In this document: one piece after another, positions 4,060-22,259 of the stretch | Layout: each line of letters starts with the position of its first letter | Numbering within the stretch: the stretch's first letter is position 1 | Source of the DNA: Basidiobolus meristosporus CBS 931.73 | Taxonomy: Eukaryota > Fungi > Basidiobolomycota | Assembly (NCBI GenBank): GCA_002104905.1 | Contig: MCFE01000323.1 | Coordinates: forward strand, 1-64,000 | Direction of reading: 5' to 3' | Length of the DNA stretch: 64,000 bases | Program-made: the position numbers and the translations under genes | The notes under the pieces: generated by a model | Databases searched by the model: none | Seen by the model: only the letters and a program-made list of their open reading frames with translations | What the model was told of the DNA's origin: nothing

Positions 4060-7000
4060 ATGACTTCTACTTTCAAGCGCTGGAAATGGCTGATACCACT
4101 ATTTCTATTAAAATGTATGACCTTTGTATATGGTGGAGAGGTGTCCATCACAAAAACTAGTTTTCACAATCTACCCACCAAGCTATTCTATTTCGAAGAT
4201 TCTGGGGTATGCCAACCTGTACTTTGCAAACGGAAGGGTGCGGATCTCTGACATTCTCTGTAGGTAATTCTTTACTTAGATACCATCCTGAAAACGGTCT
4301 ATTACTCTTCGGACGAGGGAAAATCATGGGCACCCGTGTCTGGAGTTCCTGAGCGAGTAGCCCTAGAGATGTATAATCACCCATTTGACAAGGACACGGT
4401 AATGCGCTACTGATATTGGGATATTGATATTCAATGGGATTAACTCGTCTTGCTACTTTGCAGGCATATATATTGACGAATTCTCAGACGCAGTACATCT
4501 CGCAAGACAAGGGGGCAAGTTGGAAATCATTCGAGACTCCGTTAACGCCTAGCACAAGCACCCCAGCACTGAGTTTTCATGCAGAACGAGCTCACTACGT
4601 GATATTCACGGGTGTCCGGTGTAATTCCTCCGGGGGCTGGGGCAGAGAGACATGTACGGATGAAGTAAGTTACTTGATTCGAGCGATGCGATTGTACCTG
4701 GTAGTAACTTCCATCATTGTTCCTAGTCTTATTACACAAGAGATGCGTTCAGTACTGCTCCCAAACTACTACTTCGGAACACAGCTAAATGCATTTGGGC
4801 ACGATCCACACCGCATTTTCAATCAGTGCCGGAACAAACAGTCTTGTGTATCGAAAGCGTGGTTGATGAAATAATGACGAATGCGAATAACATGAGACTG
4901 GTTCAAAGTGAGGATTACTTTGAGCATTCTAAAGTCGTAGTCCAGTTCAATGAGGAGGCTAGAGATATGAGCGGGATCGTTGGACTAACTGTGATCGAAA
5001 GATATTTAGTGGCCGCCCTGGTAAGGTTTACAGACCTCTGCTGCTCAATGAAACTGCTAATGAATGCATGGTCTGCCCCTCTAGAAGCACAAGAATAGTG
5101 ATGACATGAGCTTGTTCGTTACCCAAGATGCCATTGAGTGGGATATGGTAGAGTGTAGGCGAATAGGCAGTGATAGGTATTGCGAGTTGCTAAACGTTTC
5201 TTGCAATTCCTTAGGCAAACATTCCGTTGAACTCCGGCTTGAAGCAAAATGTACGATTATTAATTCTGCACTATTTTGAAATCTACATGTTACTAACTTG
5301 GTTTGGTTCTTTTGACCAGGCCTTTACCCTCTTGGAATCCTCATCACATTCATTGGTGCTCGACGTTGTATACTCAAACTCGGCAGCTTACGGAAATCTC
5401 TACCGATCCAATTTCAACGGCAGTTTTTACACGACCTCCCTCAAATACACTAACAGAAATGCCGCGGGGATTGTTGATTATGAGAAGATTCAGGGCGTTG
5501 AAGGCATCGTGCTATCGAATGTTGTATCGAATTACGAGATTGTCGATCGGAATGGTCCTTGGGTTGAGAAAAAACTGAAATCCATGATCTCATTTGATGA
5601 TGGTTGGTACATTCCATCGTCGTTGATGTAAGCCAGCCAAGCTAACATATGCTCTTAAGGTGCCCACTGGAGATATCTTAAGGCACCAGAAGCAGACCAT
5701 GAAGGGAGACGATACCAATGCCATTCCGGACAGAGTGTAAGACTACTCTTATCACCTGCATCTTAATATATATTAATCTGTTTCTACTTCCTGTGAAAAG
5801 TCGGATGAGTGCACATTGCATTTGCACTCTGTAACAAGGCCGCACAACTTTGGCAGAGTCTTCTCCTCCAGCGGAGCTCCAGGAATTGTTATGGGTGTTG
5901 GTAGTGTTGGCGATTCGCTTTTACCCTACGACCAATGCGATACTTTTCTCAGCGCTGACGGTGGCTTAACTTGGAAGGCAGTCAAAAGCGGCGCGCAAAA
6001 ATATGAATTTGGCGATATGGGGGCACTACTAGTCATTGTGAATGACGAATCTTCCACTGACCATTTTCACTACAGCTATGACAGAGGTCAAAGTTGGAAA
6101 AAAGTGGAATTGGGAGCCACGATACGAGCTCGGCTGTTGACCACTGACCCGGAGTCTACTACACAGAAGTTCCTGCTCCTCGGTACCACCAGCAACAACT
6201 GGGAAACGGACGGAGCGCGGCATATCATGTTCCAATTGAACTTCGAGAATGTCCTGGACAGGAAGTGCCAGTTTGAGGAAGGGAATACGAATGGTGATTT
6301 CGAGAAATGGATCGCCCGAAACCTAGAGGACGGCCCTGACTGCATTATGGGGCATACCACTTCCTACTGGAGACGTAAAGAAAATGCCAATTGCTATGTT
6401 GGCGAGAAGTTCAAAGATCCAAAACAAACACTGGATACCTGCCCATGCACCCAGGAAGATTTCGAATGTGACTATAATTTCGTTCAAGATGACAGTGGAA
6501 AATGCGTGAAGGCAGGCCCGGAGATTATTCCCGCTGGTGAATGTCAAGGAGGCAAAGAGAGGTATCTTGGAAGCTCAGGGTATAGGCTTATCCCAGGGAA
6601 CACATGCGACCGGGACAGGGGCCAGAAACTTGACGAGCCTATAGAGAAGCCGTGCAGCGCTGGAGAGCATCGAGACTCCAAGCCAACTGGAGTAGTAAAA
6701 CACAAATCCACCATCTTTTCTTCGCCGATTGATAGATTCTATTACTTCCAAAACTCCTCAGTTATACTGATCCATACTATGATGGGAGAGATCTGGAGAA
6801 GCTCGGATGAAGGGGCCACTTGGATCAAGGTCATGAAGGAGCAGGGCCCGATTGCTATATTGATCATGCACGAATGGAGCAATGAGCGGGCCTATTTCTT
6901 TACCGAAAACAACGAGTTGTGGGCCACCGTTGATAAAGGCGCAACGTTCTCCAAGATCTCGATCCCCCTGCCCGGAAATAAACTGGGCTTGCCGCTGCTG

Positions 7001-10000
7001 GACTTCCATCCCGATGAGTCGGAGTGGTTACTCTTCATGGGAGGCACTGATTGCCCAGGCTGTCACAGCGAAGCTTTCTTTAGCAACAACCATGGGGAAT
7101 ATTGGACCAAGGTTGAGACATTCGCACAAAAATGTATCTTTGGAAAGGATGCAAAGTTCACCAAAGTTCCGAAGGAAACGATCTTCTGCTCATCCTATAA
7201 GAACAAGGACGCCGGAATTAGCCAGGACGCGTTGGGTGGCATATCCACCAATGCCAATCCGCTGCAGCTGACAATGACCACCGATTTCGGGGACAACTCG
7301 CATATGGTTTTCCAGCCAGTGTCCGAGTTCATCATTACTGACGAGTTCATGGCAGTGGCAACAGAGCATGGCGGCGATCTGGTGCTCTATGTGTCTGTGG
7401 ACGGAGAGAGTTTTGCGGAAGCGGTGTTCCCCCCAAACACACGGGTCGACAAAAACGCATTCACCATTCTTCAGTCCAACACCGGCACCATCTTCCTGGA
7501 CATCTTCAGGTCAACCACATACGGGTCCGAATACGGCACCCTGTTTGTATCGAATTCCAACGGCACCTACTACTCTAGGTCTCTGGAGAACACCAATCGC
7601 AACAGCAATGGCTTGGTGGATTTCGAAAAGATGCTAGGGATCGAGGGGACCATACTGGCCAATCAAGTGATCAATGCCGAAACGTCCGGAAGGTACAATT
7701 CCAAGAAGAAAGTCCGTACCATGATCTCCTATGACGATGGCAGTACCTGGAAGCCAATCATTGCCCCGAGCGTAGATGCACTAGGCCGGCCAATCAACTG
7801 CGTGACCGACTGTTTCTTGAATCTGCATAGTCGAACCGATATCAAAGGACCAGGTGCCATATTCAGCGTAGACTCTGCTGCTGGCCTTATGATGGGAGTT
7901 GGGAATGTCGGGCCAAGCCTGCTGCCCTACGAACAAGGAAACACATATCTTACAAGGGACGGTGGACGTACCTGGAAAGAGATAAGGCGAGGCGAGAGCC
8001 TGTATGAGTTTGGTGACTATGGCGGATTGTTGGTTGCCATCGATGATGAGGGAGCTACAGACCAACTTCTATATAGCTGGGATTTGGGAGACCATTGGAA
8101 TACGTACACGTTCTCCGATGAGTCGATTCGCGTCTCGATGCTTACAATCGAGCCCACGTCGACCAGTCAGAAGTTCTTGATCATCGGCCATACTGTTTCC
8201 ACCAGGGACCGCAATGCTCAGCAGGTGGTGATCCAAGTGGACTTCAACAACATCGAAGCGCGCCAATGCAACTTCAACGAGAACGAGAACGACAATAACA
8301 ACGACTTTGAGCTATGGAACCCTGCCGGGCTATCAGAGTGTTTACTTGGCCATGAAACTGAATACTGGAGGCGCAAAAAGGATAGAGTCTGCTACATCGG
8401 TAAACCGTACGGAAAACCCAAAACCAAGCAGATCAACTGCAAGTGCACTGAAAGGGACTACCAGTGTGACACCAATTTCTGGAGAGACTCGAATGGCAAA
8501 TGTGTCCTCTATGGAACTGATCCGGATCGCCCACGTACCTGCCAATCTGGACAGAGGTACCTTGGTAGCTCCGGGTACCGGAAGATCCCCAAGAGCACAT
8601 GTGTAGGCGGGCTCCGGCTTGAAGAAAAAGTAGAGAAGGATTGTGGCACGATCACCGGCATACAAACCAAAGCGACCGTGTTTGAGCAAGAGGAAATCGT
8701 CGATTACTACTACTTCAAAAAATCTGACCATGTGCTGATGCGCACATCCACGGGTAGCGTGTGGGTGAGCTATGACGAAGGCTATGAATGGAAAAAACTT
8801 TTGGGGGATACAGGCGAGAAGGTGATCGACGTGTACATGCACCCGTACGACGAAGATAGAGCATACTTCATTACTCAAGGGAAGATCCACTACTACACGA
8901 AGGATGAAGGTAGAAAGTTGGAGCAGTTCAAGGTCCCGGTAGCTCCAAGCACCCTGGGCTCCAATTTGCTGAGTCTGCATCCCGAGGAGCCTGACTGGCT
9001 GATCTATGTGGGCAGCGAGGAGTGCGAATGGTCATTGTCGCCGAACTGCCACACAGACGCATATTATTCGTTGGATGCCGGAAATACGTGGAAAACGTTG
9101 GAGACGTATGTGAAGAGCTGCACCTGGGCCCGGACCGACAAATTCACTGCACCCAAGAAGAATTCGATCTTCTGCGAAAGCTACGCATCGAAACGCGGGA
9201 ACCAGAAGCAGTTTAGTGGGCAGCCTGTCGATTTCTTGCTGAGCACTGATTTCTTCCAAGATCAACGCCGCCTATTTGAAAACACCGGAGGCTTTGCTAT
9301 CTTTGAAGAGTTCATGGTGGTGACGCAGTTGGATAGCAGCGGGGGCGGGATGTTTCTTCAGATGAGTGTTGATGGGGAGAACTTCGCATTAGCACAATTC
9401 ACTGGCGATATCTCCAAGCTTCATCAGGCATATACAATCCTCGAGTCCACGACACATTCCGTATTCTTGCACGTCACCACGAACACGCGCACGAACGCCG
9501 AATTCGGCACCATCTATATCTCCAACGCCAATGGAACCTTCTTCACCACCTCAGTTGAGTCAGTCAACAGAGACGCTCGTGGGCTGGTTGACTTCGAAAA
9601 GATGGCTGGCATTGACGGAATTGCTATGGTGAACCAAGTCGCAAACCCCACTCAGACCAACCGGGGTGACAAGAAAAAATTGCGCTCGTTGATTTCGCAT
9701 GATAACGGACGATCATGGAAACCGTTAACGGCTCCGAAGGCGGACGTTTATGGAAGAGCGTATGCCTGTGCGGCAGAAGAATGCAGCCTTAACATCCATA
9801 GTTACACGGAGCATCAGGATCCGCAAAATCTGTTCAGCTCATCATCGGCTGTCGGGTTAATGCTAGCAGTTGGCAACGTGGGAGACCATCTAACGGATTA
9901 TGTCGAAGGAGATACTTTCCTGTCCAGAGATGCTGGTGTAACTTGGAAGGAGATCCGCAAGGAAGCCCACATATATGAATTTGGCGACCATGGAGCCATC

Positions 10001-10924
10001 CTGATTCTGGTCAACGATGAAGAGCCAACTGATCACATACTATATTCATTGGACGAGGGATTGCACTTTAAGGAGCACTATTTTGCCAAGCCAAGTGAGA
10101 AAATCCGGATTTACACTATTGCCACTGAGCCACAGTCAACTAGCCGAAAGTTCTTGCTCTTCGGACGCACTACCGGATACAAACCCAATCAAGTGGTAGT
10201 TCATGTTGACTTCTCCGGGCTGAATATTAACCAATGCTTACTCGACACGGGCAAACCCGACACAGATGATTTTGAGCTATGGAGTCCGCAACAAGAGATG
10301 GAATCCAAATGTTTGTTCGGCAGGGATGTGCAGTACTACAGGCGCATTCCCCAGAACATCTGCTACATTGGCGGCAAGTTCGAGAACCCGGCCAAGATCG
10401 TATCCAATTGCACCTGTACTGAGCACGACTTCGAATGCGATTACAACTTTGCTCGCAAAGGGAATGAATGCGTGCTGGTTCCGGGACTTGAGCCATTGAA
10501 GACCGGGTGCGATGGAAGTGCAGACTACTACTACATCTCCTCCGGGTATCGCAAAATCCCGATGTCCAGTTGCGTTAATGGATTGGATCTTGATCAACGG
10601 CAGCGATATTGGTGTCCAGGCAGAGAGTGGAAGCGCGCAGTTAAATACACAGCGATCATGGTTCCGATATTACTTGTTGGCTGTGCCGTCTATGTGTATC
10701 TACGCCGACGCGGTGTAGAGTTCCCTACATCCATTCGTGCCCCATCGTTCGCCAAACTACGATTCCTGGGAGGATTAACTCGGATCAGGGTTCCTAGGTG
10801 GAACTGGTCATGGCTACGAAGGGGCACCAGCTCTAACTATGGATACGGCTATACAAGAGTTAATCAGGATGAGCCAATGGATGTGCTCATGGAAGACTAT
10901 GATTCGGACGATATGGATATGTGA
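4060..10924 (+). CDS. VPS10: Vacuolar protein sorting receptor Vps10/Pep1 (sortilin family) with three tandem Vps10 domains; 2119 aa; exons join(4060..4206,4264..4398,4464..4664,4727..5020,5085..5147,5215..5250,5320..5602,5660..5736,5801..10924)
   Basis: Signal-peptide-like N-terminus (WLIPLFLLKCMTFVYG). Repeated Asp-box/BNR motifs (SxDxGxTW) and three Cys-rich 10CC modules. One TM helix (TAIMVPILLVGCAVYVYL) and a cytosolic tail with YTRV and an acidic cluster. Eight GT-AG introns restore one frame of 6360 nt. Confidence 0.95.
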
Positions 10925-12524: not shown

Positions 12525-13070
12525 CTCCCTTACGTTGAGACGTCTTTTCCTTATATCATCTGATCCATCTGTATCCACGTTGGTTGACCCATCATCGTAA
12601 TATTTTCAATAAATAAGCTTACATCCCAGCTAGAACTAAGATCGAACGAATTCGGTTGTGCAATTTCCTCGTCGGTATTCGTCAAACGCGTTTTGTTTAC
12701 GATGGTGACTTTACAAACTAATCGCCCATCAAACTCGAAATGATGTCACACACGCAAGGCCAACTATGAACGAGTAAGTATGTACGTGTTGGATCTTGTG
12801 ACTTGGCAACTTCGATTCCTTTATTCTGAACTATTTCACAATCGATTATCAAGGCTCGATATTTGTAACGGGTTAAATTGGCTGGGCGAAAGGTTGATAA
12901 AAAGGAAGTGGAGCGAAAGTTCCTCCGGCATGGAAGAAATTGGGTTACGTGAAGAGCAAATGGATTATATGTGATAGAGGGCTGGTAAAGGATTGGTGGC
13001 AGCAGTTGGTGCGGGACGATCGGATGTTTGAGACGCGTTCATCCACATTTCCCCGTGTCCACTAAGCCGT

Positions 13071-13238
13071 TTAGTTCTTAGCTTTGGCTTGGAAGTTGAT
13101 ATAAAGAACTTCCTCACCACGAGCTACCTTGCTGCCATACCAGGTTCCCCCGGCAACCCCTGCACCAACCATCCCGAGCCTTGGTCCATTCGTGGCTACC
13201 CGAGTGATTGCGCTGCGGAATACTCCTATGCCATACAT
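13071..13238 (-). CDS. Microprotein type B, 55 aa (MYGIGVFRSAITRVATNGPRLGMVGAGVAGGTWYGSKVARGEEVLYINFQAKAKN); NDUFA4/B12D-like (tentative)
   Basis: ATG..TAA, 168 nt, below the 60-aa cutoff of the ORF track. Gapless alignment to type A (25/54 identical) with many synonymous changes. Confidence 0.8.
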   Translation of the reverse strand: MYGIGVFRSAITRVATNGPRLGMVGAGVAGGTWYGSKVARGEEVLYINFQAKAKN

Positions 13239-13907
13239 CTTGCTATGGGTTATGTGCTATGTGCTTTTCTGGTGGGAACCTCGTTTCCTTGTCTGATGAA
13301 GTCTTCCAACGTTCCTGCTGGTATGAGCTTCCCTGATCGAGCCTTCAAGTCGATGAGTTATGAATGGATTGAGACAGGTAAAGTCAGCGCTAGGGCTGGT
13401 GCCTGGACTGATTGAAAGAGGTGAAGAAGCTAACAAGCAAGCTTGTTGACGCATCCTCGGTTCGCACTTCTCTCGCCTTTATACTGCCTGAACCCTCTCA
13501 GCAGGAACGCCCTTCAGATCATTCACCACTCCATCCATGAGCTGATTGGCTCAGCTACTCGGAGGGTAGTACGAGCCTTGTCTGGCAAGCGGTACCGAAC
13601 TCCACTCGGCTTCCTGTCCACCACATCATCCCCGCTGCATCTCCTCCTATCCACTCACCCACAGAGAGCCCACCGTTTGAGCACACCGTGATGGAGATTC
13701 AGCGAATATTCCTCCATGGCCGATGACAAGCAGCCATCAGGATTCATGTGGACGAGCATAGTATTCAGGCTTGTCCAGCCGGGCTACACCTGATTCCCCA
13801 AGATACGCTATCATGAGCTCAGATAGTCATAGTTCCTATCATGAGCTTATCGCGTAGCTGCATACAGAAATAAGCCTCCTTAATCTGCCATGTGCCTACC
13901 AATCTCC

Positions 13908-13911
13908 CTCG

Positions 13912-13942
<31 letters not shown>

Positions 13943-16750
13943 CCTCACTCTTGACCTTGTTCATTCCCATTTGCGGACATTGTATTTGCCATTATCATTA
14001 TCGTTGCCATTGCCACTGCATTATCCTCATGGTCACTCGCCTTCCTTTCGCCTGTCCGGCACACATTCCACTGACTCCATCATGACGAAGTATCCTGCTT
14101 ATCGTAAGAAGTGAGGCAGCATTTCGAGACTGATTGCATCATTCCGGCTGGTTTGCAAATTCATGCGCAACCTAGTACTTGCATACATTGTCCTCATCCT
14201 TCCGGATTTCACTCATCTTCATGTGTATACATACTCGCTCTTCCTCACTCTTCCTTACTCTTCCTCACTCTTCCTCGCTCTTCCACTTTCTTTCGGAATG
14301 GGTAGCCATCAGTGTGGGTACATGACATTGTGTATGTGCAACATGGAACAGCCATCAGAATCAGGGGTCAGTCCGCGAGGGATCACCATTCATTGGTGAG
14401 CATACTGGTCGGCCCAATCGGAGCAAACCAGGCGAAAAGAAATCTACCCAAAGCAGAGCAATGGGAAGGCAAGCAATAATGTGGTCAGGTGAAGGATCAC
14501 AAAAATGGCACGAAACACCGTTGCTATGAAGAAGTGGAGTGGGACAAGACGATCAGCAACGAGAATAGTGCTGATGGTGTGTGGTGCGGTGTGGTGTGGT
14601 GTGGCGTGGTGCAAAGCGATGGGATATTCTATTTCACTGAGCACCCTGACCAACAAGCTTGAGGGATATTGAGTGGACATTGAGTGGACGGATGATTGAT
14701 AGGTAACACCAACCAAATGACTTCCTTGCCACTGATCGCGTGGCTCCAGATCAAGATTTCCTTGAATCGCCCACCATTCACCTCCTGTCCCACCATCACC
14801 GCCAAACCAGCCCATATATAGATCCTTCATACAGCACCCAACCTCAACTCCCTGACGTCCATTCCGAAATCCTCCGAACCTTCACATGTCAATGTCATTT
14901 CAATGTCACCTTGGCGAAGCTGGCTCAATCACCTACGTGAAATAGATCTGTCAAGAATCAAGGCTTCTTCATTGGCCCGCCAATTTCTTTCACATAATCA
15001 TTCTCACTCAGTAATCAAGACCAGATTTTGCTTCACCTCAACCATCAGTTCTCAAACAAACCAGCGCCGACACGCTTACTCATCACTGATGGTAGAGTGA
15101 TTATCGCGAGTAGGGCCCTGAGGTTCCCACCCAAAAGGAAAAGATCTTTCATGGGAGTGATCTTGCCATTTCCCCTTCCCCTTCCCCTTCCCCTTCCCCT
15201 TTCCATTTCTTCCACACGAACCCTGAGATGGTTGTGTGGTGCGGTTGGTGTGAACATGTAGAGTGCACGAATAGCACATTTGTAATCACGCTCACCATAT
15301 TCACCCCGCTATCTCCCAAAATAGATATCTCCCAATCATCGTCTGTCGTTTACGATTCTGGTGGGTAAATTTGCCGCCATTGAGGCGAGTGCATGGATTT
15401 CTACTGTTGTCTGCGGCCCGTATATTACACAAGCTGGACCGGGATGTTATGAGTAAATATCCCCACTGCCGCTAGCACTATCATCCCCGATCGTCATATA
15501 TTGGAATGAATGTCAGTAAGGAGCTGCAAAACGATGCTTTTTGCAGGATCCCTCTTATTTCAAAGGGCATCTTCACTGTTACGATGATTGCTGCAATGGT
15601 CGTGACCACTATTACCATTATGGCAGCTGCCACTGTAGCCACATACTGTTATGGCCATGACCATGGTCACGGTCATAACTATTGATTTTTGTGCTGCTCG
15701 AAGAGAGAGGGAGAGTGGGACGGAGAGTGAGGGGAGGGGAGGGGAGGGGAGGGCAGGGGAGGAGGGGAGAGGAGAAGGGAGGAGGCATCTTGACTCATTC
15801 ATCCACATACTGGGTCATTCAGATCTAAGATTAGCACATACATGTGATATCACTATTCACTGCTGGTGATGGGAAATTGTCAGTAAGGCTGGTTGTTGAT
15901 CACGTGGGTGGTGAGTGGTGGGCGGTGGGTGGTGAGTGGAGCTATGGATCCTAGAAGAGTGATGGTGATCAGTGAACCCTGGGGCCAATATGGTTGGAAT
16001 GAGTGATCTGGATCATGACCAAATATGGCGGGTGTCTTGATTCCATCCCGTCCCTCATCAGAAGTGCAACCATGCCATACCACACCTCACCACATCATCC
16101 ACTACTCTACTCTGCCCTTCCGCCATTGCCACCACAATCCCTTCAGTTCCCGATTCACCCCTCACTCGTACCAGGTTGACCAGAATGGTTCGACGTATAG
16201 TGGCCACTTTGATCTCTTTTGAACACGATCCATCATGTCTATACCACATACTGAGCCCCGCTCAAAACCACCAATCTATTCATTCTAGTCAGTGACCGCT
16301 TCCTTCACAATCCCTTATATCTCTTCTCTTCATGTCTTCTCCTTACCACCTTCACCTTGAGCTAGCCCCGCGTATGACTACTTCCTTCGCACCATTGTAG
16401 TCGATGTTGCTGTGACTTCGAATGCGTATTGATGCACCTCGTACTAAGGCCAGAGGAAAAGCCACTTGCTTGACACAATAAAACCGCCAAACCATCACGC
16501 ACTCACACATTCGCTCAGACACCGACGCGCGCGTATTCCCATCCATATTATCACCAAGCTTTCCACTGTCTTTGGTACTACCAATGCTCTTTTATTGTTC
16601 ATTTGCAAACATCCTTGCCATGAACTGACATCGGGATCTACGTTTCGGCGCATTAGTGTTGGTGTAAGGTGGTAGGAGGCATGAGGCATGAGGCTCGAGT
16701 ATGGGCGTATGTTCAGGTAAAGGCAAAGGCAAAGGCAATGGCAATGGGAT
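13908..16750. repeat. Cluster of short tandem repeats in the left arm: (CTCACT)n ~13915-13950, (GTGGT)n ~14577-14610, (CCCCTT)n ~15170-15200, GGGGA/GGAGA tract ~15730-15783, (GGCAAA/GGCAAT)n ~16718-16748
   Basis: Read directly. They produce the low-complexity spurious ORFs (PLPLPL, GKGKGK, LTLTLT). Confidence 0.9.
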
Positions 16751-16946
16751 GGCTGATAAGGGGCTGGGGCGCTTGGCCATAGTTTCGTGTATGTACAGGC
16801 ACCGCCATACCCATCGCCCCACTTCTCAACAACCAGCCAGGAAATATGATCATTCGGTTCAGTCTATCTCAATAGGGAGGAGGGGAATCTAGTCTAGTTC
16901 AGTGTCACATGTCGCGAGGGGGAGAGGCTGTGGCAGGGCTGCACTC

Positions 16947-17111
16947 TCAGGCGGTTTGCTTTTTGAAGTTGATGTAGAGGACCTCTTGGCCGCGAATGAC
17001 CTTGTTTCCATACCAGCCAACCCCTAGAATCCCGACACCGAAGGCGGCTAGCTTTGGAGCTTCGGAGACGAAACGAAGGGTGGTGGAGCGAAGAATACTG
17101 GTGGAAGGCAT
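16947..17111 (-). CDS. Microprotein type A, 54 aa (MPSTSILRSTTLRFVSEAPKLAAFGVGILGVGWYGNKVIRGQEVLYINFKKQTA); NDUFA4/B12D-like (tentative)
   Basis: ATG..TGA, 165 nt; TATAAAT about 54 bp upstream; Gly-rich hydrophobic segment; paralogous to the other three micro-ORFs. Confidence 0.8.
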   Translation of the reverse strand: MPSTSILRSTTLRFVSEAPKLAAFGVGILGVGWYGNKVIRGQEVLYINFKKQTA

Positions 17112-17164
17112 CGGGAAGCTTCTTAAACGAGGTGGATGATTTTTGGGACAGGCGGCACTTCGAA

Positions 17165-17171
17165 ATTTATA
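17165..17171 (-). promoter_or_regulatory. Putative TATA box (TATAAAT) for the left type-A micro-ORF
   Basis: About 54 bp upstream of the ATG at 17111; positionally symmetric with the TATA at 18253. Confidence 0.45.
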
Positions 17172-18252
17172 CCATCAAGGAAGGTGATCAAGGTGCGGCA
17201 ACCTGCTTACCAATTGGGTGGGTGTGCTAGAGAACGATGTGCTCAAGATTTGGTTATGGAAGAGATTTGGTAAGCCTGCTCATTGATACTTCAAACGATC
17301 CGTAGGAAACGGTACCTGCCACTATCACATGCTTCATGACCCACTGTGACCAATATCCATTGCAGGATGAGGTTGGTTGGACCTTCATTCCGAATATCTC
17401 CGGGGAGGCGTGGATTTCGAGAAGTCCCCGAAATTCGAGATAATCAGGGAATTGGGTTTAATCAATTTCTATGATCATTAAAGAGCAGGTGCAACGAAAG
17501 AAAAGGCATCGCAACACTCAACCAGTTGATTAGAGGTGTTGGAGCAAGTCACCACATGGTTTCCAGAGCAGCCAAATTTCTCATAGTCATGTTACCAATG
17601 TAACTTCAAACGGTGCGGTAATGATCTATGTATGAACTATCTATCATATCAGCCAACCACATGCACATTCGAGTACGATCCATTATGCCAAGTGACATGA
17701 AATCCCCCAGTAGGTATTGGTTATGGAGAAACACCTGATACTGCTATCTAACGGCGCTACTCGAGCACATGTGTCATTATGATGATTGCACTAATAAAGG
17801 CTGGTCATAACTTACGGTAACGTACAGTGGGAGATTTCCAAGCAACGCCGTGACAGTCATGATTAATCAGGTTATCCTGCAATCGAGCATGTCAACGGTT
17901 TGTCATATTCCATACGGTCTTCAATGCAGAAAACTTATCTAGAATGGGCTAAAACGGATTCACCATCCGTCAAGGGTTCAGTATTCCGCTAAATTGAATT
18001 TCAATACAGATGTCAAATTCCCCTCGGGCAGAATCGGAGGGTGGTGGGGTTCTTTCCGGCACCTCAAATGGGATTTTGATTAAGGTGCAACAGGGATTGA
18101 CTCATTTAAGCTCATTCCAAAGATAGTTCGAGGAAATGAAATTTGTTTATTTCGACCCATACCTTCCTATTTTGGCAGTGTTCAGATCACGGTTCATTGG
18201 CTATCAAGAACTTGTAATTGACGTATCATTGAAATTAATGCCATATCGAATG

Positions 18253-18259
18253 TATAAAA
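18253..18259 (+). promoter_or_regulatory. Putative TATA box (TATAAAA) for the right type-A' micro-ORF
   Basis: About 57 bp upstream of the ATG at 18316. Confidence 0.45.
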
Positions 18260-18315
18260 AGACTTGCCAACGATGTCAAGCAGCCATCAATATTCCGTCT
18301 CATTTCAATATCGAC

Positions 18316-18480
18316 ATGTTTGCTATTCCAGTCGTTCGTTCCACAGCCCTTCGTATTGTCTCCGAAGCTCCAAAGCTAGCCGCCTTCGGTGTCGGGATTC
18401 TAGGGGTTGGCTGGTATGGAAACAAGGTCATTCGCGGCCAAGAGGTCCTCTACATCAACTTCAAAAAGCAAACCGCCTGA
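18316..18480 (+). CDS. Microprotein type A', 54 aa (MFAIPVVRSTALRIVSEAPKLAAFGVGILGVGWYGNKVIRGQEVLYINFKKQTA); NDUFA4/B12D-like (tentative)
   Basis: ATG at 18316 inside track ORF 18136..18480. Same length as the left-arm A copy; TATAAAA about 57 bp upstream. Confidence 0.8.
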   Translation: MFAIPVVRSTALRIVSEAPKLAAFGVGILGVGWYGNKVIRGQEVLYINFKKQTA

Positions 18481-20120
18481 GAGTGCAGCCCTGCCACAGC
18501 CTCTCCCCCTCGCGACATGTGACACTGAACTAGACTAGATTCCCCTCCTCCCTATTGAGATAGACTGAACCGAATGATCATATTTCCTGGCTGGTTGTTG
18601 AGAAGTGGGGCGATGGGTATGGCGGTGCCTGTACATACACGAAACTATGGCCAAGCGCCCCAGCCCCTTATCAGCCATCCCATTGCCATTGCCTTTGCCT
18701 TTGCCTTTACCTGAACATACGCCCATACTCGAGCCTCATGCCTCATGCCTCCTACCACCTTACACCAACACTAATGCGCCGAAACGTAGATCCCGATGTC
18801 AGTTCATGGCAAGGATGTTTGCAAATGAACAATAAAAGAGCATTGGTAGTACCAAAGACAGTGGAAAGCTTGGTGATAATATGGATGGGAATGCGCGCGC
18901 GTCGGTGTCTGAGCGCATGTGTGAGTGCGTGATAGTTTGGCTGTTTTATTGTGTCAAGCAAGTGGCTTTTCCTCTGGCCTTGGTACGAGGTGCATCAATA
19001 CGCATTCGAAGTCACAGCAACATCGACTACAATGGTGCGAAGGAAGTAGTCATACGCGGGGCTAGCTCAAGGTGAAGGTGGTGAGGAGAAGACGTGAAGA
19101 GAAGAGATACAAGGGATTGTGAAGGAAGCGGTCACTGACTAGAATGAATAGATTGGTGGTTTTGAGCGGGGCTCAGTATGTGGTATAGACATGATGGATC
19201 GTGTTCAAAAGAGATCAAAGTGGCCACTATACGTCGGACCATTCTGGTCAACCTGGTACGAGCGAGGGGTGAATCGGGAACTGAAGGGATTGTGGTGGCA
19301 ATGGCGGAAGGGCAGAGTAGAGTAGTGGATGATGTGGTGAGGTGTGGTATGGCATGGTTGTACTTCTGATGAGGGACGGGATGCAATCAAGACACCCGCC
19401 ATATTTGGTCATGATCCAGATCACTCATTCCAACCATATTGGCCCCAGGGTTCACTGATCACCATCACTCTTCTAGGATCCATAGCTCCACTCACCACCC
19501 ACCACCCACCACTCACCACCCACGTGATCAACAACCAGCCTTACTGACAATTTCCCATCACCAGCAGTGAATAGTGATATCACATGTATGTGCTAATCTT
19601 AGATCTGAATGACCCAGTATGTGGATGAATGAGTCAAGATGCCTCCTCCCTTCTCCTCTCCCCTCCCCTCCCCTCACTCTCCGTCCCACTCTCCCTCTCT
19701 CTTCGAGCAGCACAAAAATCAATAGTTATGACTGTGACCGTGGTCATTTAGGGTTAGGGTCAGAGTGGCGATATGATGCTCGTTGGAATGAGACCGAAAA
19801 GATGTCCCCAATGGGCGAATCAAAAGGCTCTTCCCATTTTTGACAGATCAATTTCGCATAGGTGATTCAAACCAAATCACCCTCATTATTCTTTTGTAAC
19901 GCGATGGTGAAGATGACATTGACATGTGAAGGTTCGGAGGATTTCGGAATGGACGTCAGGGAGTTGAGGTTGGGTGCTGTATGAAGGATCTATATATGGG
20001 CTGGTTTGGCGGTGATGGTGGGACAGGAGGTGAATGGTGGGCGATTCAAGGAAATCTTGATCTGGAGCCACGCGATCAGTGGCAAGGAAGTCATTTGGTT
20101 GGTGTTACCTATCAATCATC

Positions 20121-20180
20121 CGTCCACTCAATGTCCACTCAATGTCCACTCAATGTCCACTCAATATCCACTCAATATCC
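20121..20180. repeat. 11-bp tandem repeat (ACTCAATRTCC) x5 in the right arm; only 2 copies in the left arm (~14663-14690)
   Basis: Read directly on both arms. Confidence 0.85.
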
Positions 20181-21589
20181 CTCAAGCTTGTTGGTCAGGG
20201 TGCTCAGTGAAATAGAATATCTCATCGCTTTGCACCACGCCACACCACACCACACCACACCGCACCACACACCATCAGCACTATTCTCGTTGCTGATCGT
20301 CTTGTCCCACTCCACTTCTTCATAGCAACGGTGTTTCGTGCCATTTTTGTGATCCTTCACCTGACCACATTATTGCTTGCCTTCCCATTGCTTTGCTTTG
20401 GGTAGATTTCTTTTCGCCTGGTTTGCTCCGATTGGGCCGACCAGTATGCTCACCAATGAATGGTGATCCCTCGCGGACTGACCCCTGATTCTGATGGCTG
20501 TTCCATGTTGCACATACACAATGTCATGTACCCACACTGATGGCTACCCATTCCGAAAGAAAGTGGAAGAGCGAGGAAGAGTGAGGAAGAGCGAGTATGT
20601 ATACACATGAAGATGAGTGAAATCCGGAAGGATGAGGACAATGCATGCAAGTACTAGGTTGCGCATGAATTTGCAAACCAGCCGGAATGATGCAATCAGT
20701 CTCGAAATGCTGCCTCACTTCTTACGATAAGCAGGATACTTCGTCATGATGGAGTCAGTGGAATGTGTGCCGGACAGGCGAAAGGAAGGCGAGTGACCAT
20801 GAGGATAATGCAGTGGCAATGGCAACGATAATGATAATGGCAAATACAATGTCCGCAAATGGGAATGAACAAGGTCAAGAGTGAGGGTGAGAGGGAGAGA
20901 GTGAGAGCGAGAGCGAGGGAGATTGGTAGGCACATGGCAGATTAAGGAGGCTTATTTCTGTATGCAGCTACGCGATAAGCTCATGATAGGAACTATGACT
21001 ATCTGAGCTCATGATAGCGTATCTTGGGGAATCAGGTGTAGCCCGGCTGGACAAGCCTGAATACTATGCTCGTCCACATGAATCCTGATGGCTGCTTGTC
21101 ATCGGCCATGGAGGAATAATCGCTGAATCTCCATCACGGTGTGCTCAAACGGTGGGCTCTCTGTGGGTGAGTGGATAGGAGGAGATGCAGCGGGGATGAT
21201 GTGGTGGACAGGAAGCCGAGTGGAGTTCGGTACCGCTTGCCAGACAAGGCTCGTACTACCCTCCGAGTAGCTGAGCCAATCAGCTCATGGATGGAGTGGT
21301 GAATGATCTGAAGGGCGTTCCTGCTGAGAGGGTTCAGGCAGTATAAAGGCGAGAGAAGCGCGAACCGAGGATGCATCAGCAAGTTTACTTGTTAGCTTCT
21401 TCACCTCTTTCAATCAGTCCAGGCACCAGCCCTAGCGCTGACTTTACCTTCGGTCTCAATCCATTCATAACTCATCGACTTGAAGGCTCGATCAGCGAAG
21501 CTCATACCAGCAGGAGCGTTGGAAGACTTCATCAGACAAGGAAACGAGGTTCCCACCAGAAAAGCACATAGCACATAACCCATAGCAAG

Positions 21590-21757
21590 ATGTATGGCAT
21601 AGGAGTATTCCGCAGCGCAATCACTCGGGTAGCCACGAATGGACCAAGGCTCGGGATGGTTGGTGCAGGGGTTGCCGGGGGAACCTGGTATGGCAGCAAG
21701 GTAGCTCGTGGTGAGGAAGTTCTTTATATCAACTTCCAAGCCAAAGCTAAGAGCTAG
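21590..21757 (+). CDS. Microprotein type B', 55 aa (MYGIGVFRSAITRVATNGPRLGMVGAGVAGGTWYGSKVARGEEVLYINFQAKAKS); NDUFA4/B12D-like (tentative)
   Basis: ATG..TAG, 168 nt. Identical to the left B copy except the last codon (AGC vs AAC) and the stop (TAG vs TAA). Confidence 0.8.
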   Translation: MYGIGVFRSAITRVATNGPRLGMVGAGVAGGTWYGSKVARGEEVLYINFQAKAKS

Positions 21758-22259
21758 GTGGCTCATTGGAAAAATTGAGAACTAAGCTCCTCCCGTATGC
21801 TAGATAGCTTTACCATTCCAAACCGTGTCAATTGCTCTACAGATACGTTTATCTTCGGGCAGAAATATATCCTCTACTGCCAAGGAAATTCGGTTTCAAA
21901 TCATCACATCCTTATCTACATGCATATCCATATCCGTATTCTATACCCCACAAACTTAGCACGCAGCCTGTCATGTCGGGCATTTTTCATAAAGATCTAC
22001 GAAAACCGAACGCACTTTATTTTCACCATGTATTCCAAGTGGCGCTTCCCACATCTTTTGAGACGCGCCAAACCTCTCGCCAATCATCATTTCCACTCAT
22101 CTCCAATTCTGTATCCCATGTGGAGCAACGGACCATCGATTCCCTTCTCCATGCCCTGACAATTGACAGTTGTGGGTATAACATGCTTGCAAGCCGTTTG
22201 AACCTGGTACTCAAGTCATTTCGTGGTGTCATGTAGAGTTTCCCTTGAAGCTACATCCG

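Follow-up and report, generated by a model that had tools for sequence, protein, structure and literature searches.

Three kinds of described system bear on the locus reported here. Presequence-bearing single-pass microproteins of the mitochondrial inner membrane, such as the supernumerary subunits NDUFC1, COX7B, NDUFB11/ESSS, COX6C and plant SDH7, are a class and not a homologous family. NDUFA4/COXFA4 (Pfam B12D, PF06522) is a small basic protein in which a proline precedes a hydrophobic segment of the GxGxxG type that ends in tyrosine. Palindromic segmental duplications with arm-to-arm gene conversion have near-identical arms around a unique spacer, along which identical and diverged tracts alternate. 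A stretch of 64,000 nucleotides (nt) of the fungus Basidiobolus meristosporus CBS 931.73 (assembly GCA_002104905.1, contig MCFE01000323.1, positions 1 to 64,000; hereafter the window) contains four microgenes of 54-55 amino acids (aa), named B, A, A' and B', in mirror order. Overall, they are read here as two paralogous microgenes, apparently restricted to Basidiobolus, that were doubled by an inverted duplication and whose products would act at a mitochondrial membrane (probability about 0.6).

Two gene types on a palindrome

The four open reading frames (ORFs) and the repeat that carries them are listed below. X1 is a DNA run, which may be the same sample that the assembly came from, and X3 is a run taken as a transcriptome.

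13071-13238, minus strand: microgene B, 55 aa, left arm; ATG-initiated ORF whose start is the first minus-strand ATG within its X3 contig
16947-17111, minus strand: microgene A, 54 aa, left arm; ATG-initiated ORF with a chimeric N-terminus, the first 6 codons lying beyond the repeat
18316-18480, plus strand: microgene A', 54 aa, right arm; ATG-initiated ORF with an ancestral-type N-terminus (MFA..)
21590-21757, plus strand: microgene B', 55 aa, right arm; ATG-initiated ORF whose product differs from B at one residue
13058-17092: left arm of the inverted duplication, 4035 nt (repeat search, MAFFT alignment of the arms, X1 depth)
18335-21770: right arm of the inverted duplication, 3436 nt (repeat search, MAFFT alignment of the arms)
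17093-18334: unique spacer, 1242 nt, with the divergent 5' regions of A and A' (MAFFT, blastn)

All four ORFs had been reported in the first-pass annotation, together with a gapless alignment of types A and B in which 25 of 54 positions are identical. This alignment is borne out for A' against B, with 23/54 for A against B; A/A' and B/B' likewise align without gaps. In tblastn searches of the window, the two types match each other with E-values of 1e-13 to 1e-14, and neither retrieves a fifth copy. Judged by this similarity, A and B are true paralogues.

The arms are 96-100% identical in the repeat search and in the MAFFT alignment; they therefore hold two gene types, each recently copied, and not four independent genes. 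The mirror symmetry is that of a young inverted duplication of ~3.4-4.0 kb. Hence, the cassette B<- A<- ->A' ->B' proposed earlier stands as a layout, and its reading as four genes gives way to two types doubled together. The divergence between the arms is patchy, identical tracts of 200-500 nt alternating with tracts that are 1-5% diverged, as in palindromes that undergo gene conversion. The differences from those systems are the small scale, with arms of ~4 kb, and the coincidence of the boundaries with gene ends: the inner repeat boundary falls within codon 7 of A/A', and the outer one lies 13 nt past the stop codon of B/B'. One segment is arm-specific, with 758 nt in the left arm (14899-15656) against 165 unrelated nt in the right arm (19748-19912). 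In the window, blastn detected no other copy of the 758-nt segment or of the spacer, and no similarity was found between the two halves of the spacer.

The palindrome is present in the reads, because the X1 depth is raised in the arms and contigs bridge the junctions. The k-mer depth in X1 is ~187 in the arms versus ~109 in the flank and spacer; X1 contigs span both junctions of the left arm, and one covers 17040-18334 and then turns into the opposite strand. Another X1 contig joins 14898 to 15657, which is the right-arm form.

The position of the inner repeat boundary, in codon 7, is the sole reason why A and A' differ in their N-termini. A' starts with MFA.., as do two relatives described below (P0002 and P0010), and A starts with MPSTSIL.., which is encoded by the spacer. 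Because A' keeps the common start, the right arm is the parent. A is a 5'-truncated copy, cut in codon 7 and by chance in frame with a new ATG in the spacer that has a TATA-like box before it. The frame of A is open for 21 codons upstream of this ATG (17093-17174, minus strand), and the new N-terminus may owe its existence to the chance openness of that frame. The idea of three distinct N-termini serving as isoforms is not sustained: the third, that of A, is a by-product of the breakpoint and no evidence of a designed isoform, and the 5' end of A has no X3 coverage.

Coding evidence

Between A and B, the proportion of nonsynonymous differences (pN) in the core, codons 33-49, is 0.098, against a proportion of synonymous differences (pS) of 0.885; codons 1-32 are near neutral (pN 0.48, pS 0.54). 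The eight core codon pairs previously listed as differing only by synonymous changes are all present (GGA/GGC, GTC/GTA, CGC/CGT, GGC/GGT, GAG/GAA, GTC/GTT, CTC/CTT and TAC/TAT). The comparison of orthologues extends to the rest of the frame. P0010 of B. meristosporus and P0002 of B. ranarum have a pS of 0.64 and a pN of 0.09, with a ratio of nonsynonymous to synonymous rates (dN/dS) of 0.07, and keep the position of the stop codon. The whole ORF is constrained, because dN/dS is low in the N-terminal part as well (0.08 in the 29 shared codons).

DNA similarity between the window and a further microprotein locus, L004, is limited to the ORF in blastn (16946-17092 and 18335-18481). A second relative from B. 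ranarum, P0006, has a canonical intron of 67 nt (GTGAGT..TACTAAT..TAG) within the codon of the invariant Asn N48. When spliced, P0006 regains the tail N-x-x-K-Q-x-A; unspliced, the frame ends after two codons (FK).

On this evidence, the microgenes are genuine protein-coding genes under strong purifying selection, as had been claimed from the core codons. Their small size, the lack of a Pfam family and the scarcity of convincing genes elsewhere in the arms are what chance ORFs in duplicated non-coding DNA would also display. Such an origin is hardly credible in view of the dN/dS between species, the homology confined to the ORF, the conservation across an intron and the transcript contigs.

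Transcription and deposited annotation

Run X3 is labelled 'DNA?' and is taken as a transcriptome because its contigs total 27 Mb and cover only patches the size of genes, with depths that vary 70-fold. Two of its contigs cover microgenes:

18298-18841, plus strand: A' transcript contig, 545 nt, depth 427 (18298-18334 in the spacer, then in the arm)
13050-13388, minus strand: B transcript fragment, 339-nt contig, depth 6, 0 differences

The 545-nt contig is assigned to the right-arm copy A' because it departs from the left arm at five positions, precisely those at which the arms differ in 16586-17092. It starts 18 nt upstream of the ATG and 39 nt after a TATAAAA (18253-18259), its first ATG is the A' start, and it ends 5 nt past an AATAAA at 18831-18836. 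The 339-nt contig is assigned to left-arm B because the right arm differs from it at many positions there. Both contigs are colinear with the genome. With X3 taken as a transcriptome, A' is abundantly transcribed as a monocistronic mRNA of ~545 nt, and B is weakly transcribed. In X3, the one run examined, coverage is nil over the A-specific 5' end (17093-17240); A may be silent, though contigs can hide rare variants. A, A' and P0002 each have a TATA box 54-63 nt before the ATG; for A it is a minus-strand TATAAAT at 17171-17165, at a distance of 54-60 nt.

In the deposited annotation, A' appears as a 64-aa model without an ATG start (18286-18480), and A and B have no model. Over B', an antisense model of 118 aa is annotated (21410-21766, minus strand). 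At the A loci, conservation is seen for the sense frame but not for the corresponding antisense frame. The antisense model is probably spurious; an unstranded transcript may have been annotated with its longest ORF.

Between A and B, the arms contain many short repeats of the dinucleotide and hexanucleotide type, which translate as LPLPLP, GKGKGK, GRGRGR and TLTLTL (13890-14000, 15076-15260, 15650-15800 and 16700-16830, with their mirror copies). No convincing gene was seen between A and B in most of the arm sequence. Two small X3 contigs of low depth (13777-13896 and 15786-15928) adjoin repeat tracts of the left arm.

Relatives and genomic neighbourhood

When 1.84 billion representative proteins were searched exhaustively with HMMER, just two full-length relatives were returned, P0002 and P0006, of 51 aa each; the remaining matches were long repetitive proteins aligned over short stretches only. 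The two are encoded in tandem on GCA_040143965.1 (locus L002), the assembly of B. ranarum AG-B5 (10.1101/2025.03.31.646025). A word-index search (5.8 billion) added P0010, which is K493DRAFT_320860, a 54-aa protein of B. meristosporus CBS 931.73 on contig MCFE01000735.1. A scan of JGI metagenomes with the family alignment gave 88 pattern matches and no relative. All relatives are 51-54 aa long, with both the initial Met and the stop conserved. From these searches, the microproteins appear to be an uncharacterised family of 51-55 aa, so far found in Basidiobolus only.

The family adjoins a Vps10/sortilin gene of ~2100 aa at three loci in two species:

4100-10924, plus strand, 5' limit approximate: Vps10/sortilin gene of the window, ~2100 aa (gene call with Sortilin-Vps10 Pfam matches)
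L002, 5249-6156: microprotein locus linked to a Vps10/sortilin paralogue
L004, 7848-8012: microprotein locus linked to a Vps10/sortilin paralogue

The Vps10 gene of the window is 65-72% identical in DNA to those of L002 and L004 (blastn). The microgenes are located 3' of Vps10 in the window and 5' of it at L002 and L004. Thioredoxin and TPR neighbours are common to L004 and the B. ranarum locus. The regions of the window and of L004 are old paralogues, because their Vps10 DNA is only 65-67% identical, about as far apart as from B. ranarum.

Outside the family, a repetitive protein of 274 aa, P0007, has four copies of ..HVVWYGN.V.G.EQE.FYS.N.. that match the C-terminal motif of the microproteins (E 8.5e-7). 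This likeness is probably convergence. The P0007 repeat looks like strand-turn-strand, which suggests that the tail of the microproteins may form a beta-hairpin.

Protein features and proposed function

All members are basic, with a net charge of +4 to +6. In composition, the first 18 residues contain two to three Arg/Lys, at most one Asp/Glu and three to seven Ser/Thr. They are followed by a Gly/Ala-rich segment with Kyte-Doolittle maxima over 19 residues of 1.28-1.54 (0.72 in B) and by a family-invariant tail, W-Y..K..G-x-E-V-x-Y-x-N. The earlier description of an Arg-containing, acid-poor N-terminus with a Gly-rich segment was thus a fair one: the first 18 residues have two or three positive and at most one negative charge, and the hydrophobic stretch follows.

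The most likely single reading, held tentatively and at a little under even odds, is that of a single-pass accessory protein of the mitochondrial inner membrane. The basic, acid-poor N-terminal segment would direct import into mitochondria, and the Gly-zipper segment (GxGxxG, moderate hydrophobicity) would be seated in the inner membrane. The invariant WY..K..G.EV.Y.N motif would then fold as a short hairpin or strand and dock to a partner complex, much as supernumerary single-pass subunits do in respiratory complexes. With NDUFC1, COX7B, NDUFB11/ESSS, COX6C and plant SDH7, the family has in common the size class, an N-terminus that is basic and poor in acidic residues, a single Gly-rich segment of moderate hydrophobicity and, for A', a high transcript level; it differs in having no Pfam or PDB profile match to any of them. 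The nearest named neighbours in the ESM Atlas, a language-model resource, are NDUFC1, COX7B, ESSS, COX6C, SDH7, MITRAC7, EMRE and ATP-synt_J. They recur with and without the N-terminal 16 residues, with scores of 0.70-0.80 that serve as leads only. The broader part of the first-pass proposal, a small mitochondrial membrane protein of the respiratory-chain type, is plausible but unproven on these leads; its NDUFA4 identity is not supported.

Several observations weigh against an inner-membrane role. The hydrophobic segment lies below the classical threshold of 1.6 in all members, and clearly so in B (0.72). The AlphaFold2 model, from a six-sequence alignment, is a single long helix of low confidence, with a predicted local distance difference test (pLDDT) value of 63 and a predicted template modelling (pTM) score of 0.31. 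By the Atlas's own calibration, scores of 0.70-0.80 are at noise level. Among solved respiratory-chain and ATP-synthase subunits in the PDB, none matches the family profile at E<=10. The conserved stretch would also fit a Rossmann beta-alpha-beta fingerprint, implying a soluble fold. The status of X3 as a transcriptome, finally, is taken from its size and coverage pattern only.

Comparison with NDUFA4 and other families

The first-pass annotation had identified the four genes as NDUFA4/COXFA4-like. A resemblance exists: the proline and the small-xxx-small helix feature are found, with P19, G25/G27/G30 and Y34 of the family spaced as P17, G23/G25/G28 and Y32 of NDUFA4. This ungapped pattern, P-x5-G-x-G-xx-G-x3-Y, is real but generic to many small membrane proteins. 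None of the full-length proteins (A, A', B, B', P0002, P0006 and P0010) matched B12D in hmmscan at E<=10. The best B12D score came from a fragment, P0002:15-51, with 11.4 bits (E 0.21), against a Pfam gathering score of 21.5 bits; this match is no independent support, because it reflects the same resemblance as the one noticed earlier. Profile comparison with hhalign gave a probability of 2.2% against human NDUFA4 (sequence identical to PDB 9i7u_N) and of 4.4% against a 12-species NDUFA4 profile, which is vertebrate-only, as were the NDUFA4 sequences that a word-index search returned, and thereby limits the test. Only the hydrophobic segments are paired in these alignments.

The invariant C-terminal domain of vertebrate NDUFA4 (P-D-V, N-P-E-P-W-N-K, Q-Y-K) has no counterpart in the family. 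There is no room for it, because the microproteins end 16-20 residues after the hydrophobic segment; they are 27 residues shorter, begin with a presequence-like segment and carry an invariant tail of their own, WY..K..G.EV.Y.N. The nearest Atlas families do not include B12D. Two of the supposed isoforms are 98-100% identical duplicates, and the third N-terminus is the breakpoint by-product in A, whose specific 5' end lacks X3 coverage. The NDUFA4 assignment and the complex IV isoform-switching cassette are therefore not supported, the latter being an over-reading of a symmetry that the young palindromic duplication explains; fungal B12D homologues in such a cassette are quite improbable.

Other family leads are no stronger. 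Pfam scans of all members and two fragments gave sub-threshold matches only (DUF3313 at E 0.088, AlaDh_PNT_C at E 0.2, B12D at E 0.21), and PDB searches with the profile and with single sequences gave only LSm6, cupin, ND2 and thioredoxin reductase (E 0.07-1). UQCR11, the 6.4-kDa subunit of cytochrome bc1, is similar in size (56 aa), and its G-rich helix precedes a W and a tail, ..V.YIN..FKK, comparable to V.Y.NFKK of the family; identity is 32% over 34 columns. The alignment is gapped, UQCR11 has no presequence-like N-terminus, and it was rejected at an hhalign probability of 2.7%; ATP synthase subunit j (ATP18) was rejected at 0.3% (both queries verified against PDB). Bacterial sorting signals of the PEP-CTERM type (Atlas 0.72-0.81) were set aside as compositional look-alikes, with a Pro, a Gly-rich helix and a basic tail.

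Alternative readings

Two further explanations would make the ORFs parts of other proteins. They could be terminal exons of larger genes, such as an LSm6-like Sm protein with the Sm2 motif ..RG.EVLYI..; the best PDB match of the family profile is indeed the Sm2 hairpin of LSm6 (E 0.07-0.12, 19 residues). This is very improbable, and is excluded because of the transcript structure and the lack of a visible upstream Sm1-like segment: the A' contig begins 18 nt before the ATG, the A' and B contigs are colinear with the genome, and no Sm1-like segment was seen by eye in any spacer frame upstream of A and A', where no profile scan was run. The relatives, too, are full-length at 51-54 aa with conserved Met and stop, and selection also acts on codons 1-32. 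Somewhat less far-fetched, yet still improbable, is that the family arose by domestication from the N-terminal part of a (mitochondrial) FAD/NAD(P) oxidoreductase, with residues 20-49 forming a soluble beta1-GxGxxG-alphaA-G-beta2 unit of the Rossmann type and not a membrane helix. The FAD-binding fold of thioredoxin reductase pairs, over its first 33 residues and without gaps, with P0010 21-53 (E 0.72); the fit takes in GxGxxG, the hydrophobic pattern of beta2 and the second conserved Gly. Positions 30-61 of AlaDh_PNT_C are matched at E 0.2. The spacing is canonical (GxGxxG-x3-[A->Y]-x6-G-x2-V-x-[VY]-h-[DE->N]), and such a unit would account for G30 and G41, which are invariant in the family. 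The segment in B, moreover, has less hydrophobicity than a typical membrane helix needs. All these E-values (0.2-0.7) are, however, non-significant. P0006 lacks the first two glycines (S-x-L-xx-G), and an invariant Asn stands where the terminal acidic residue (Asp/Glu, the ribose ligand) is expected. The protein ends 5-7 residues after this Asn at the end of beta2, so that the rest of the domain is absent, and we know of no independent fold or function for a beta-alpha-beta unit of 35 residues. No Rossmann family is found among the Atlas neighbours, and no parental gene was identified.

The remaining explanations keep a membrane protein and change its site or its role. A non-mitochondrial microprotein of the endoplasmic reticulum (ER), Golgi or vacuole, tied as a type II signal-anchor protein to the adjacent Vps10/sortilin receptor, is unlikely. 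In its favour, the linkage to Vps10 paralogues is kept at three loci in two species, and a basic flank before a hydrophobic segment also suits an N-in signal anchor. The linkage can nevertheless be plain descent from one segmental duplication, the side of Vps10 differs between the loci (5' at L002 and L004, 3' in the window), and a Gly/Ala-rich, weakly hydrophobic segment is atypical of an ER signal anchor. Rather unlikely as well is a more specific form of the inner-membrane reading, in which the family would supply a supernumerary subunit, or an assembly factor, that is confined to Basidiobolus and serves a respiratory complex or the ATP synthase, with diverged paralogues exchanged according to conditions. 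The exchange would involve the highly expressed A type, the weakly expressed B type and the P0010/P0006 type, as a lineage-specific counterpart of NDUFA4/NDUFA4L2 switching that arose independently of B12D.

Significance

The finding has no bearing on a long-standing open question, and the claim on complex IV is unsupported. What the window offers is a clear and checkable taxonomically restricted family of microproteins, 51-55 aa long, with a dN/dS of 0.07 and one abundantly transcribed member. Standard annotation is poor here: of the four copies, one has a truncated model, one is covered by an antisense model, and two were missed. From the palindrome it can also be seen how a breakpoint that a duplication leaves within a gene of 54 codons can give rise to a new in-frame N-terminus. 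If the products are indeed mitochondrial membrane subunits, the respiratory machinery of this medically relevant, early-diverging fungus would contain a lineage-specific addition.

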